A stretch of 64,000 bases of DNA from Stylophora pistillata. Taxonomy: Eukaryota. Under the pieces are notes generated by a model, which was given only the letters and a program-made list of their open reading frames with translations, had not been told where the DNA came from and made no database searches. The DNA is taken from contig NW_019217850.1 in NCBI RefSeq assembly GCF_002571385.2, positions 55,905 through 119,904 on the forward strand, given 5' to 3'. Position numbers and translations under genes: made by a program. How positions within the stretch are numbered: position 1 is the first letter of the stretch; every line of letters begins with the position of its first letter. Positions 4,119 through 13,240 of the stretch are shown piece after piece.

Positions 4119-7100
4119 TCAATTTGAATCTGGTCGTTCAAGGACCTCGTACGCAGGTGGCTCAAATGCAAGGTTGACGTTGCCATAAGGATGCTGATTA
4201 GGGCCCTCCAGGACGTCGTACATGGGTGCATTGGCGTATTCAAAGTTGGGCCCCTCCGGGACATTACATAGTGGTGTTGAATAGCATTCTCCTCCACTTA
4301 AACTATTACTAGAGGCCTCGTTTGCCGATATCTTTTCAAGTTCGTCTAAATCTGCATAGTCAGCATACTCTGGTGATTCTTCCAAGTCCGCAGGGGGTCG
4401 ACCTGTGGTGTAGGGTGGTTGATACTCAGGTTGGCTAGGCAAGATTTTCCCTGGGGTTTCGCCAGGGTTGAGAAGAGAGAGATATTCAGGTATTTCATCT
4501 TGACACTGAAACAAAAATGTAAGGAATGAAATCATCAGAGGCGTTTCAAAACTTTCTATTGAAAACATCAAATATTTAAAGTGCAAATCTTCGTGAAAAT
4601 TATTTCGTTTGAAAGACTTAATGTTGCAGCTGAGGATGTCCCTCACTGATGCATCACTCCCGAGGAAAGGCTGTCATGGATACGCGTTCTTTAACTAAGA
4701 CCTAATTTCAAGCAAGTTTCAAAAGGAATCCTGGGGCCGGTTTCTCGAAAGTCTCGGTAACTTAAAAGGCCCGTAAAGCGGTTCTGTTTTCATTCAAGAT
4801 GGGGATTTCACAAGTTTTGAAAATAGTGCAATAAAACTATCAGTTAAAGAAACAAAATGGACTGGCTTGAGTGCCAGAACCTGCTTTTCTATCCTATACC
4901 TTTTGACTTTAAAACGTGGCTACGGGCCCGCTAAGTTATTGGGACTTTCGAGAAACGAGCCCCAGAACTGGACTGCTTTTGCATTGTTTCGCTCTGATAT
5001 TTGCTCAGCAGACTCATGCAGCCCTCTCAACCAATCAGATGCAGAACTTGGCCACCGGCGTTTTCCCGCGCTTTGGGTACACCGGAGTTCTCATTGGCTC
5101 TTTACGAATTTTTCTTTCTTTTGATTGGTCGCTGGGTGACTTTTATTTTGATTGAACGGCACTCGATTGAAATACGCTCTAGCATAACGGATCAAATATA
5201 AATAGGGTACTCTTAATTACCTTATGTACCCCGTTCCTTATTAAAGGTTGATAGATCAATCCATCGGGATTTAAACTCTGGTAAGTGTTTAGAGTGGGAT
5301 CCGATGTGTAACTTGCGGCCACAACGTTCGCTTCAACTAAGCTCTGATAAGCAGGTGTATCTTGATTTGGTTTTCCACTGTAATGAGGTGTAACGTGAGC
5401 AGAGTCATAAAAATTTTCCTTGGCAGGAGGAACATTTCTAGTGGACGTATTAAGTGACTTTTTAGTGGCGTTGTTCAGCGGGATCTTTTGGCTGTCCTTC
5501 GCTCCGTTGTTCTTTATTAGCAAATCTTCAAAATTCCCGTAGGAAGGATTTCCTATAAATATAGAAAAAAATAATTTCCAATAATTTCTTCTTAAAAAAA
5601 CTGAGTTTGAGGTCTTACTTACCCAGATTCCAACTTACGCTTGCCCCGACACTGATCTACTGTTAGTTTAATCAGATTAGTTTGGTTAGTTATATCGATA
5701 ACCCGTCTTATACTACCTATGGCTATTTGAAGGTCAGCCAATGTAATGATGATAATCTGGAATCGTAAATGAAAAGTGTTTTCACACTTCCCGCCATCGT
5801 TTGGGCTCATCACACCCTGTCCCCCCCCCACAGAGATTGTCACGTGGCATGCCCAAACGACAGCTCGGCTGACTAAAACTTCCTCATTCAGTTTCAGAAA
5901 TCGATCAAGGAAAGCCCCTGGGGAAGAGGGTAAGTCTGAGTTATGATCAACTTACCTACAAGACTGACGGAAGACTTGCGAACCATAGCTTCTGGTTCTA
6001 TGTAGACTGCGTCATCGCAGATGGGATTCTTAAAAAGGCCAGTCATAGGGAATTGGTTCTACAATATAAAGCACAGAACAGCTCAGTGGGTGAAAATTCT
6101 CTAGGTAATTACTTTAAAAAAAAAAAAAAAAAATAGGGTTAGTTTTCCATCTGATTTTTAAAAAAGTGATGCGAGTCTTATGGATTACATTGCGAAGCTA
6201 AATAATGTATTTATCGTGGGTTATGTAACCCTTTCTTTGGCGGGAGTTAAATGGTACGCTGTCACAATTGCTTCATTAGCGGAAGGTTATATATATTTGA
6301 GTTATTGTCATGTATACTCATTCGCGTCTTACGACCGTCCTGACGCCCTCTAAATCAAATACTCAGTGACTAGGCGTTATCACTTTCTCTTAGACGTAGT
6401 TTTTGCATGCTGCTATATGAAAGGTTTCGCATGTTTACGGAATCATTGTTATACGAACATAGTTTAGATTGTTTTGTAAGGTGTTTTTTCTTTTCTTGCT
6501 GTATTTTTTAAATTTCCGAGTTTTCATTGTTTGTTGTATAATTCCTATCTGTTTTGTCGATAAAGGCATTTAATAAAGAGGGTCCAACAAGGCTTGTGTT
6601 GACACACCCCAATTGTGGTTGCTCATTGCATGATTAACGTTTTGTATTCGTTTGAGCAGGGTAGGGAATTAGAATATAAAGCGCATGCCACACCGGATTA
6701 TTTCCGACAACCAACAGAATATTGCTCTAGGTATCAACAATTTCTGCTGCAACTTCCTTTCAATCAATGAGAAGCCAATCGCACTTTTCCGTGCTTCAAG
6801 TTGATTGCGTGTTATTCCTTCGAGTTCTCATTGGCTGCTTGAGAAAAATTTGTTTTTTCTGCTAAGCAACTGTTGTTACTTTCAATTGGCTTTATACGTT
6901 CAACCACGCTCAATCAAAACGCAGAGCAGGTGATCAACCGATAGAAAAGCCATTCAGTGGGCAAAGCAAAACTGAATGTAAGGTTCGATCCTCGTAAATA
7001 AAAAACAAAGACAGTGCATTGCAAGTTTAATCCTTTCATTTTCCAGAAGAAGTTCTAGCTAATTTTCTCAAAGTTTTACTTACTTTAACCAGCAAAATAG

Positions 7101-13100: not shown

Positions 13101-13240
13101 TCGTTGGGGCATTTTGCCGAGGGGTCAAGATTTGTGAAGAAATCCTGTCCCGATTTTAATATGTTACGAGTAACATTGAACAACATCCCTTGACATGTGC
13201 CAAAGATTAAAGAGCACAACACTAAAAGCCATGTCGGCAT
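4119..13240 (-). CDS. Type I transmembrane receptor: signal peptide, shavenoid-like Cys-rich domain, mucin-like stalk, TM, Tyr-rich tail with ITAM
   Basis: Ten exons with GT-AG junctions and consistent phases: 13240-12931, 11592-11378, 11194-11074, 10328-9916 (contains an N gap), 9156-8822, 8085-8054, 7272-7244, 6058-5956, 5552-5221, 4505-4119. Signal peptide MPTWLLVLCSLIFGTCQG. TM LMVFVVVGVVALICVAVGLLCTWVII followed by RRKR. The shavenoid resemblance (TR..GQDFF..C..C..CxC....FR....CV....GC..LF.....PLVVL) is recognised by eye only. Confidence 0.85.
4734..4962. mobile_element. PIF/Harbinger-type MITE in the last intron of the receptor
   Basis: TIRs gggccggtttctcgaaagt / actttcgagaaacgagccc with CWG-type 3-bp flanks. 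Confidence 0.6.
7536..8029. mobile_element. Abundant TTAA-CCC (piggyBac-like ends) MITE with a nested element at about 7641-7926
   Basis: Shared core aatttctccttacaatatca...aaattctc...gagaa...aaagggttaa. Related copies near 17167, 29150, 30226, 32868, 33778, 35885, 40113, 42128, 42930 and 47326. Confidence 0.65.
9190..9335. repeat. Short palindromic element
   Basis: Inverted ends tcttattaaccaagc...gcttggttaataaga with an internal inverted match. Confidence 0.6.
12547..12655. mobile_element. Palindromic MITE with TAG...CTA ends (Academ-like)
   Basis: tagtctcccttgcagccgttttttcggatgtcacgcaacgctccc / gggagcgttgcgtgacatccgaaaaaacgactgcgagggagacta, with imperfect 9-bp flanks gttggtgaa / actggtgaa. 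Confidence 0.7.

Follow-up and report, generated by a model that had tools for sequence, protein, structure and literature searches.

A stony-coral type I glycoprotein with a Sha_B_N-type head and a predicted phosphotyrosine docking tail

We describe a ten-exon gene on the minus strand of a 64,000-nucleotide (nt) stretch of the Stylophora pistillata genome (assembly GCF_002571385.2, contig NW_019217850.1, positions 55,905 to 119,904; this whole stretch is called the window, and coordinates are counted from its first base unless a contig is named). The gene runs from 13240 to 4119. We regard as securely established that it is expressed and single-copy and that it encodes a type I glycoprotein, seen in our searches in stony corals alone, with a head made of a Sha_B_N domain and a beta sandwich, a mucin-like stalk, and a conserved multi-tyrosine tail. 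Our best reading of its sequence is a scleractinian receptor or transmembrane adaptor with a predicted phosphotyrosine docking tail. We lean toward a tail that acts as a phosphotyrosine docking platform, in which a dual YxxL unit would be docked by a tandem-SH2 protein. Coupling of this unit to Syk, in the manner of an immunoreceptor tyrosine-based activation motif (ITAM), is plausible but unproven, and an immune or phagocytic role, phosphorylation of the tail, and the choice of SH2 partner are what we infer from the sequence.

A spliced gene with a conserved tyrosine-rich tail

The exon borders were read from the sequence and its three-frame translation and were checked by script. All introns are of the GT..AG type, and the phases agree from exon to exon over all ten exons. 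RNA was aligned to positions 4050-10010 from two sets of poly(A) contigs, a third set of contigs that are probably RNA, and a run of stranded raw reads. All six joints tested, from the stalk exon to the last exon, were present in RNA, each reading CT..AC on the plus strand (Table 1). In the stranded run, first mates map to the plus strand, which shows that the gene is transcribed from the minus strand. The third contig run, X8, showed an odd 8088-8825 form, which we took for an alignment variant. The joints between exons 1 and 2, 2 and 3, and 3 and 4 rest on end-to-end colinearity with natural orthologue transcripts, to which the window exons were aligned as separate rows; the position of the first intron is supported because orthologue open reading frames (ORFs) of exon 1 run on into the intron after the same ...FAG as in the window. 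The first-pass annotation had proposed this spliced model, from signal peptide and Cys-rich domain through a Thr-rich stalk and a transmembrane (TM) helix to a Tyr-rich tail, and splice borders, phases, RNA, and orthologues are all consistent with it; the joining of the tail exons to the TM exon was seen in spliced RNA.

Exon 1 encodes 103 amino acids (aa) with a hydrophobic N-terminal signal, 10 Cys, and two N-x-S/T sites. Exons 2 and 3 encode 71 and 40 aa with two Cys each, and exon 4 and the first part of exon 5 are Thr/Ser/Pro-rich. The sole strongly hydrophobic stretch beyond the signal lies in exon 5 (Kyte-Doolittle window 3.16) and is followed by QRRKR. The tail beyond it has ~300 aa and 19 Tyr, distributed as 1, 0, 1, 7, and 10 over exons 6 to 10; it gave no Pfam domain match, from which we take it to be probably disordered. 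Differences between RNA and assembly in the tail exons (window 4191-6022), taken from 40 listed variant rows of 131, include 10 coding variants in exons 8-10, numbers too small for statistics. Seven change a residue (I13V in exon 8; V77G and A78V in exon 9; R36P, S70T, G72R, and T77I in exon 10), and no Tyr is altered by any of the ten; R36P produces the GPPPAD string found in all orthologues.

The tail carries the pair YQSL-NPDGLI-YQPL exactly where it had been reported, downstream of the TM segment on the spliced mRNA. The pair agrees with the ITAM consensus Yxx[L/I]-x(6-9)-Yxx[L/I], and within it LIYQPL fits the pattern [I/L/V/S]xYxx[I/V/L] of the immunoreceptor tyrosine-based inhibition motif (ITIM), both as given in the available text of PMC9546547. 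The other short motifs listed for the tail (NPSY, three YxN, and YLSL, YADL, YDVL, and YEVL) were all found as well.

We aligned six full-length orthologues with the window exons (alignment A2). The dual YxxL unit is kept with its exact x6 spacing in 6/6, including Montipora, where it reads Y-E-S-L, six residues, Y-Q-P-L, while the flanking residues diverge; the conservation on which the ITAM proposal depended is thus borne out. The pair is also present in 38/38 stored sequences covering the site, in five variants, a count that is partly circular because the coverage rule itself used YQPL, and that includes many isoforms and near-identical copies. The residue at position -2 of the pair's second Tyr is L or V in 5/6 orthologues and M in Montipora. 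Ten of the 19 tail Tyr are invariant in all six orthologues, Montipora included, and 17/19 are kept in each nearer orthologue tested; for two of these (L017 and P0036), Tyr were kept at 17/19 versus 152/272 for other tail residues (Fisher p 0.0026). Several blocks outside the pair are held as well. The acidic block E-x-PEYADYADLDELE-x-I of exon 10 is invariant in 19/19 sequences of an alignment of last exons (A1), and EYL-x-[LI]L is kept in 6/6 orthologues. The string PPEYQPPY-x-x-GPPPAD is conserved, a PPxY precedes the C-terminal Tyr in most orthologues (the first PPxY in the window reads QPEY), and three copies of a Y-x-V-L-E-G-P unit are conserved, the first of which has Cys for Tyr in the window.

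These sequences came from several searches. Exon 1, run against 1.84 billion protein representatives, gave 15 matches at E <= 1e-3 (10 at <= 1e-10), none of them a full-length protein. Twelve were short exon-1 ORFs running into the intron, and the exon-1 orthologue fragments are 42-76% identical to the window; the remaining three were repetitive proteins that match the signal-peptide region only and were not used. With exon 9, under a length filter, a single fragment came up (71% identical); exon 10 matched 18 proteins (45-81% identical), among which is a last-exon fragment from Desmophyllum pertusum. When the exon-10 alignment was used to scan metagenomes, six loci were returned. In two of them, the spliced transcript contigs L017 and L019, exons 5-10 follow one another head to tail, and each contig has one ORF of ~692 aa from the likely start. 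A search with a natural orthologue ORF then retrieved a 755-aa transcript protein close to that of the window, the 943-aa Pocillopora damicornis model pdam_00016069, which is fused with the adjacent gene, and, from Montipora foliosa, a protein of 654 aa that is 36% identical over its whole length; a cluster look-up added orthologues in P. verrucosa and M. capricornis. Full-length orthologues are hence in hand from P. damicornis, P. verrucosa, M. foliosa, and M. capricornis, in addition to transcript contigs. The closest named orthologues are from Pocillopora, and all named ones found are from stony corals (Scleractinia); Pocillopora and Desmophyllum belong to the robust clade and Montipora to the complex clade.

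Several results weigh against an ITAM-type docking tail. First, in 20,000 within-exon shuffles of this Tyr/Leu-rich tail, an ITAM-like pair (counted at x6-8) arose in 3.6%, so that the pair alone is only mildly unusual; in favor of such a tail, the 19 Tyr include seven YxxL, and at least seven occurred in only 0.04% of the shuffles. Second, many ITAMs have acidic residues a short way ahead of their first Tyr. Here no acidic residue lies right before the pair's first Tyr, which is preceded by T-L-N-T, with the nearest Asp at -6, and in Montipora Q-G-V stands there. Over the whole tail, D or E occurs within four residues before Tyr at 11/18 versus 104/248 other positions, a modest excess stated without a significance test. 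Third, Tyr are not significantly better kept than other tail residues in the closest orthologue (17/19 versus 208/272, p 0.15) or in Montipora (10/19 versus 88/272, p 0.06), and the pair is surpassed in conservation by the acidic EYADYADL block, the best conserved part of the tail. Fourth, NPSY is present in the window and missing in Montipora, and the three YxN motifs, read as Grb2-SH2-type sites in the first-pass annotation, are each kept in at most 1/6 orthologues or have a Tyr that is itself not conserved; we rejected the Grb2-type reading. Fifth, YxxL, NPxY, and ExxxLL strings can equally act as endocytic sorting signals. Lastly, the ESM Atlas was empty for the head: exon 1 led to a spider toxin cluster with a score of 0.76, far below threshold, which was rejected, and the orthologue ectodomain had no usable match.

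A possible partner for the dual YxxL unit is encoded in the same genome. We searched the 397.6-Mb assembly and found at least 50 SH2 matches and several tandem SH2 loci. One of these (C104:649792-659605, minus strand; L039 and L041) has two complete SH2 exons 1.2 kb apart in a locus broken by N runs. They are followed, on the same strand, by exons that contain the kinase motifs HRDLAARN and DFG...YY and score with PK_Tyr_Ser-Thr. The first SH2 has human SYK as its best match (E 3.5e-45), with ZAP-70 at ~1e-34 and PTPN11 at 4e-18. The locus thus encodes a Syk-like tandem-SH2 kinase, in agreement with the Syk/Zap70 homologues described for cnidarians in the available text of PMC5978004, where upstream ITAM receptors are inferred and none is named.

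We suggest the following mechanism. A divergent, cystine-rich Sha_B_N domain packed on an Ig/cadherin-like beta sandwich would form a compact head on a mucin-like Thr/Ser/Ala stalk, and the tail would present conserved short Tyr motifs set apart by variable linkers. Ligand binding or clustering of the heads would lead a Src-type kinase to phosphorylate the conserved Tyr, that is, those of the YxxL-x6-YxxL pair, the acidic EYADYADL block, YDVL, the Y(A/E)VL-EGP repeats, and the YxxP sites, and the phosphotyrosines would then recruit SH2 proteins. The dual YxxL unit would be a natural tandem-SH2 site, either for the Syk-like kinase of this genome or, because the second half of the pair is also ITIM-like, for an SHP-type phosphatase.

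The head, the stalk and the Sha_B_N family

The sole Pfam match of exon 1 is Sha_B_N (PF23328; E 5.4e-4, 20.6 bits), below the gathering cut-off of 24.4; orthologue L017 scores 16.3 bits, also below it, and exons 2 and 3 have no Pfam match. We compared a profile of exon-1 orthologues (A5) with a profile of Sha_B_N exons from the own genome (A6) by hhalign, which gave a probability of 94.4% and E 8.8e-8 over 62 columns. In a combined alignment (A4, 24 rows), R25, D33, C73, C75, and C93 are invariant, and F35, C44, C58, C71, T81, and F82 are kept in at least 90% of rows; Sha_B_N matches at E <= 0.01 come from 4/13 orthologue-group rows, the other 11 matching rows being paralogues chosen by the same criterion. 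Because of the profile match and the common Cys framework, we accepted exon 1 as a divergent Sha_B_N-type domain. Sha_B_N is the N-terminal domain of Drosophila Shavenoid isoform B, and in the window protein, as in other Sha_B_N members, a signal peptide precedes a cystine-rich module of ~60 aa in which R, D, Cys (C-x-C-x-C), and T-F stand at the same invariant positions. The earlier shavenoid call therefore holds for the N-terminal domain, which is the part that this comparison covers.

An AlphaFold2 model of an orthologue ectodomain (225 aa, 21-row alignment) reached a pLDDT of 82.8 and a pTM of 0.80, and its residues 100-212 form a beta sandwich (domain 2). In Foldseek, the best matches of domain 2 are V-set/I-set immunoglobulin (Ig) domains (E 3.9e-4, TM 0.4-0.5). 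In VIA-align, the best Z is 7.7, and cadherin repeats, SusE-like, and S-layer sandwiches rank as high as Ig; a Z below 8 may reflect only a common arrangement. No Ig family of Pfam exceeded its cut-off in the exons or in a full-length orthologue, and the one Ig-named match (Ig_DLEC1_6th, 19.2 bits versus a cut-off of 27) falls in the stalk/TM exon 5, not in the head. The proposal of a non-Ig ectodomain thus stands at the level of sequence families and is doubtful at the level of fold, where the likeness to an Ig/cadherin-like sandwich is weak. Domain 1, modelled alone from exon 1 of the window (pLDDT 76.4), has no solved look-alike: no Z reached 5, and the best, 3.5, is to C-type lectin fragments, a relation that we did not accept. 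Further Pfam matches below their cut-offs lie over the stalk and TM segment and were set aside as compositional (Ig_DLEC1_6th, TMEM154, podoplanin, Cep192, and others in exon 5; RIFIN and Adeno_E3_CR2 in L017).

Between genera, the ectodomain exons are 72-78% identical and the tail exons 67-90%. The head is no more variable than the tail, which is a mild argument against an allorecognition-type locus, and a hypervariable head of that type is not supported between genera.

The stalk contains an assembly gap, an N run inside exon 4 (Table 1). Both gap flanks are coding and Thr-rich (Ser/Thr/Pro fractions 0.49 and 0.42), and both align to the orthologue stalk; the frame of the upper flank is set by the phase-1 end of exon 3 and that of the lower flank by the RNA-confirmed joint into exon 5. 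The nominal 205 N plus the two following bases would preserve the frame, a coincidence with a one-in-three chance because the gap length is only estimated. At the site of the N run, the Pocillopora orthologues P0038, P0041, and P0042 have an (A-A-T-T-T)-like T/A-rich repeat that recurs a different number of times in P. damicornis, in P. verrucosa, and in transcript-derived sequences, so that the stalk varies in length. Such a variable-length repeat is a plausible and likely cause of the gap.

The own genome has 20 Sha_B_N matches, 18 of them over the Pfam cut-off, and the window gene is absent from this list. They lie on contigs C968 (4), C480 (7), and C759 (3), and also on C331, C630, C1931, C2527, C1669, and C441, many in tandem clusters; one lies 3.2 kb before the window on its own contig (C67, of which the window is 55905-119904). 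We read 12 first-exon Sha_B_N ORFs, and all have a signal peptide and the same Cys framework. As in the window gene, the module of these paralogues sits in a single first exon; unlike them, the window domain has an insertion (…NLDAGKPW…). The matches have the look of a coral family that has expanded and whose members are secreted or membrane-bound; the window gene is a divergent member. Exons 1, 2, 9, and 10 have only self-matches in the own genome, and since exons 2, 9, and 10 match nothing but themselves, the tail is unique to this gene there, which also sets it apart from the paralogues. In agreement, when three orthologues were searched by tblastn against 16 paralogue loci, the tails of the tandem neighbours alone were matched, via the fused P. 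damicornis model.

Features of the locus and its neighbors

Table 1. Coordinates of the gene, its motifs, and its RNA-supported joints in the window
Feature	Position	Strand	Description
Exon 1	12931-13240	-	ATG at 13240; signal peptide 13187-13240; Sha_B_N-like domain ~12983-13180; phase-1 end
Exon 2	11378-11592	-	First half of second ectodomain domain, predicted beta sandwich; colinear with orthologue transcripts
Exon 3	11074-11194	-	Second half of beta sandwich; FGYI..V.V.C ... C.LFK.. motif, common to tandem neighbors
Exon 4	9916-10328	-	Thr-rich stalk; sequenced parts 10222-10328 and 9916-10016; N run 10017-10221
Exon 5	8822-9156	-	Ser/Thr-rich stalk; TM helix 8842-8919; basic stop-transfer QRRKR; both joints in RNA
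Exon 6	8054-8085	-	32-nt micro-exon; juxtamembrane tail; 1 Tyr
Exon 7	7244-7272	-	29-nt micro-exon; tail; 0 Tyr
Exon 8	5956-6058	-	Tail; YIEP (YxxP motif), its Tyr kept in 5/6 orthologues
Exon 9	5221-5552	-	Tail; NPSY 5539-5550; first YQSL; ITAM-like pair
ITAM-like pair YQSL-x6-YQPL	5242-5283	-	Within exon 9; second half LIYQPL fits ITIM pattern
Exon 10	4119-4505	-	Tail end; stop 4119-4121; EYLSLL; (P)PEYQPPY-GPPPAD-like block
Exon 10 acidic block E-x-PEYADYADLDELE-x-I	4329-4379	-	Invariant in last-exon alignment
Exon 10 YDVL	4209-4220	-	
Exon 10 YEVL	4140-4151	-	In C-terminal PPAYEVL
Joint	4505-5221		3/3 contig runs; 5 raw reads
Joint	5551-5955		3/3 contig runs; 7 raw reads
Joint	6058-7244		2/3 contig runs; 1 raw read
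Joint	7272-8054		2/3 contig runs; 0 raw reads
Joint	8084-8821		2/3 contig runs; 0 raw reads
Joint, exon 4 to exon 5	9155-9915		3/3 contig runs; 4 raw reads

Some features of the introns and flanks stand apart from the protein. In intron 4, RNA contig depth at 9224-9621 rises to ~215,000, versus ~80-100 on the exons, with many loose ends and backward joints from 9502/9503 to 9435; the interval resembles a transcribed element of high copy number, such as a short interspersed nuclear element or a miniature inverted-repeat transposable element (MITE). Smaller depth peaks lie at 4647-4845, 7433-7631, and 7831-8029. Intron 1 contains a near-perfect nested palindrome (12547-12655), with inner arms of 35 nt that are 97% complementary and 2 nt apart and outer arms of 24 nt that are 92% complementary, in the form of a hairpin or MITE. 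On the plus strand, an ATG-initiated open frame near 13488 (MAKRKDSFDQ…), ~250 bp upstream of the gene's own ATG, may be a divergently transcribed neighbor with a shared short promoter region.

Just downstream of the gene's 3' end, C67:33971-52728 (L023 and L024) holds one, probably two, minus-strand genes of the same architecture in tandem. A neighbor's Sha_B_N first exon lies at C67:52573-52728 (25.2 bits), and both loci have exon-3-like exons (…GY[IV]MKL.LNC…CLLFKV.G…), Thr/Pro-rich stalks, and TM-like segments. The tails of these neighbors differ from that of the window gene, e.g., EEPVYAEVADVYP. The model pdam_00016069 fuses the gene with the neighbor's tail, in which EYNILEPE occurs twice, reminiscent of the Y-x-V-L-E-G-P repeats. 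Between the neighbor's exon-2-like and exon-3-like ORFs, and probably intronic, is a 403-aa open frame (C67:49422-50630; L023:6423-7631, minus strand) whose product has a YqaJ-like recombinase domain (E 3.2e-16) and a SWIM zinc finger and also matches a viral alkaline exonuclease; the frame is probably part of a mobile element.

Known receptors, rival readings and meaning

We compared the gene with three known systems. Like the Alr proteins of Hydractinia, it encodes a cnidarian single-pass protein with an ITAM-like motif in its cytoplasmic tail; the available text of PMC9546547 reports tails with ITAM and/or ITIM motifs for Alr, together with Syk, Shark, and SHP homologues in that genome. According to the same text, Alr heads consist of V-set/I-set Ig domains and an Fn3-like fold in a polymorphic histocompatibility complex, and Alr tails are divergent. 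The coral protein, in contrast, has a Sha_B_N domain and one generic sandwich, its motif is conserved across genera, and its head is not the more variable part.

Draper/CED-1/MEGF10 proteins are single-pass, with an ectodomain of EMI and EGF repeats. Their tails resemble the coral tail in having NPxY and an ITAM-like pair, which in their case recruits a Syk-family kinase; the Draper ITAM acts with Shark, as cited in the available texts of PMC5978004 and PMC9546547. The coral gene differs in having no EMI or EGF Pfam match in any exon or in the full-length orthologue, no homology being detected, and in its x6 spacing and the loss of NPSY in Montipora. The vertebrate ITAM chains and transmembrane adaptors share with it the Yxx[L/I]-x6-9-Yxx[L/I] arrangement, a multi-Tyr docking tail, and a Syk-family kinase in the genome. 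The ectodomains of these vertebrate chains are tiny, and ligand is bound by separate receptors with which the chains associate. The coral protein has a large, glycosylated ectodomain of its own, and its tail is far longer and holds further conserved motifs.

The main rival to a docking tail, which we hold to be unlikely, is a trafficking or endocytic cargo receptor whose YxxL, NPxY, and ExxxLL strings and acidic cluster are read unphosphorylated by clathrin adaptors as the protein cycles between surface and endosomes. Mucin-like sorting receptors do cycle in this way, and the protein has the mucin-like stalk, the strings YQSL, YQPL, YLSL, NPSY, and EYLSLL, the last with its EYL-x-[LI]L form in every full-length orthologue, and the invariant acidic block. 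Sorting signals, however, are usually found in short tails, not in one of ~300 aa with 10 invariant Tyr. Several of the conserved Tyr are YxxP or stand in acidic contexts that are not of the YxxΦ type, and sorting alone leaves the three Y-x-V-L-E-G-P repeats and the fixed x6 pair unexplained. Sorting and docking can coexist in one tail.

Quite improbable, in our judgment, is an adhesion or cortex-linking glycoprotein whose head binds matrix or cells and whose Pro-rich tail (PPxY, GPPPAD, YxxP) binds WW, SH3, and actin-associated proteins, which would be analogous to dystroglycan or to an actin-linked role of Drosophila Shavenoid. The Sha_B_N-like N-domain fits such a role, Shavenoid being described as actin-associated in the available text of PMC1551925, as do a domain 2 that is as cadherin-like as it is Ig-like (Z 6-7.7) and the conserved PPxY and PPEYQPPY-x-x-GPPPAD strings. 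Against it, the window's first PPxY is altered to QPEY, the fold matches with Z below 8 may reflect a common arrangement only, and neither the exons nor the full-length orthologue match a cadherin or dystroglycan family by sequence.

We consider it very unlikely that the protein is an inhibitory or modulatory receptor whose dual YxxL unit serves as an ITIM-type or bis-phosphotyrosine site and recruits an SHP-like phosphatase with tandem SH2 domains instead of Syk. LIYQPL agrees with the ITIM consensus in the available text of PMC9546547, with L or V at -2 in five of the orthologues, and the genome has several tandem SH2 loci; the M of Montipora falls outside this consensus, the pair's first Tyr has N or G at that position, and an SHP-like phosphatase was not identified in the genome. 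A gene-model artefact, or chance motifs in a functionless low-complexity tail, is largely refuted and has almost no probability left, for although the composition of the tail is skewed toward P, N, S, L, A, E, and Y and orthologue names look derived from low complexity, spliced RNA matches the model exactly, full-length orthologue transcripts exist, and tail blocks are invariant across genera.

A literature search, with supplementary tables (e.g., cell-atlas expression) outside its reach, found no description of this protein family or of any coral ITAM receptor. Among the matches listed, the literature on "shavenoid" concerns insects only, and the model name pdam_00016069 is unmentioned. Public databases already contain the orthologues, though solely under an uninformative name ("uncharacterized protein") or misleading ones ("mucin-3B isoform X2", "bromodomain-containing protein DDB_G0270170-like"); the latter two look as if they were taken from low-complexity similarity. 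In our reading, the protein joins the plan of an ITAM-like single-pass receptor to a type of head that has not been seen on receptors of this kind. The most far-reaching possibility, to which we give only a small chance, is that this is the first conserved ITAM-bearing surface receptor of reef-building corals, which would act in microbe or symbiont recognition or engulfment upstream of a Syk to CARD-CC/Bcl10/paracaspase route (available text of PMC5978004) and would belong to a tandemly expanding family that shares a head and differs in Tyr-motif tails. By sequence, the head has no match among immune-receptor families, and no solved fold resembles the N-domain.

Should the tail do no more than sort the protein, the gene encodes an ordinary lineage-specific glycoprotein. 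The misleading public names are corrected here, and Sha_B_N, so far a Pfam-only domain, gains a defined receptor context. Corals have Syk-family kinases and the CARD-CC/Bcl10/paracaspase module, and this gene is a concrete, expressed, single-copy candidate for a receptor that feeds them. With a dual YxxL unit held at fixed spacing between robust and complex corals, ITAM-type signalling in corals becomes directly testable.

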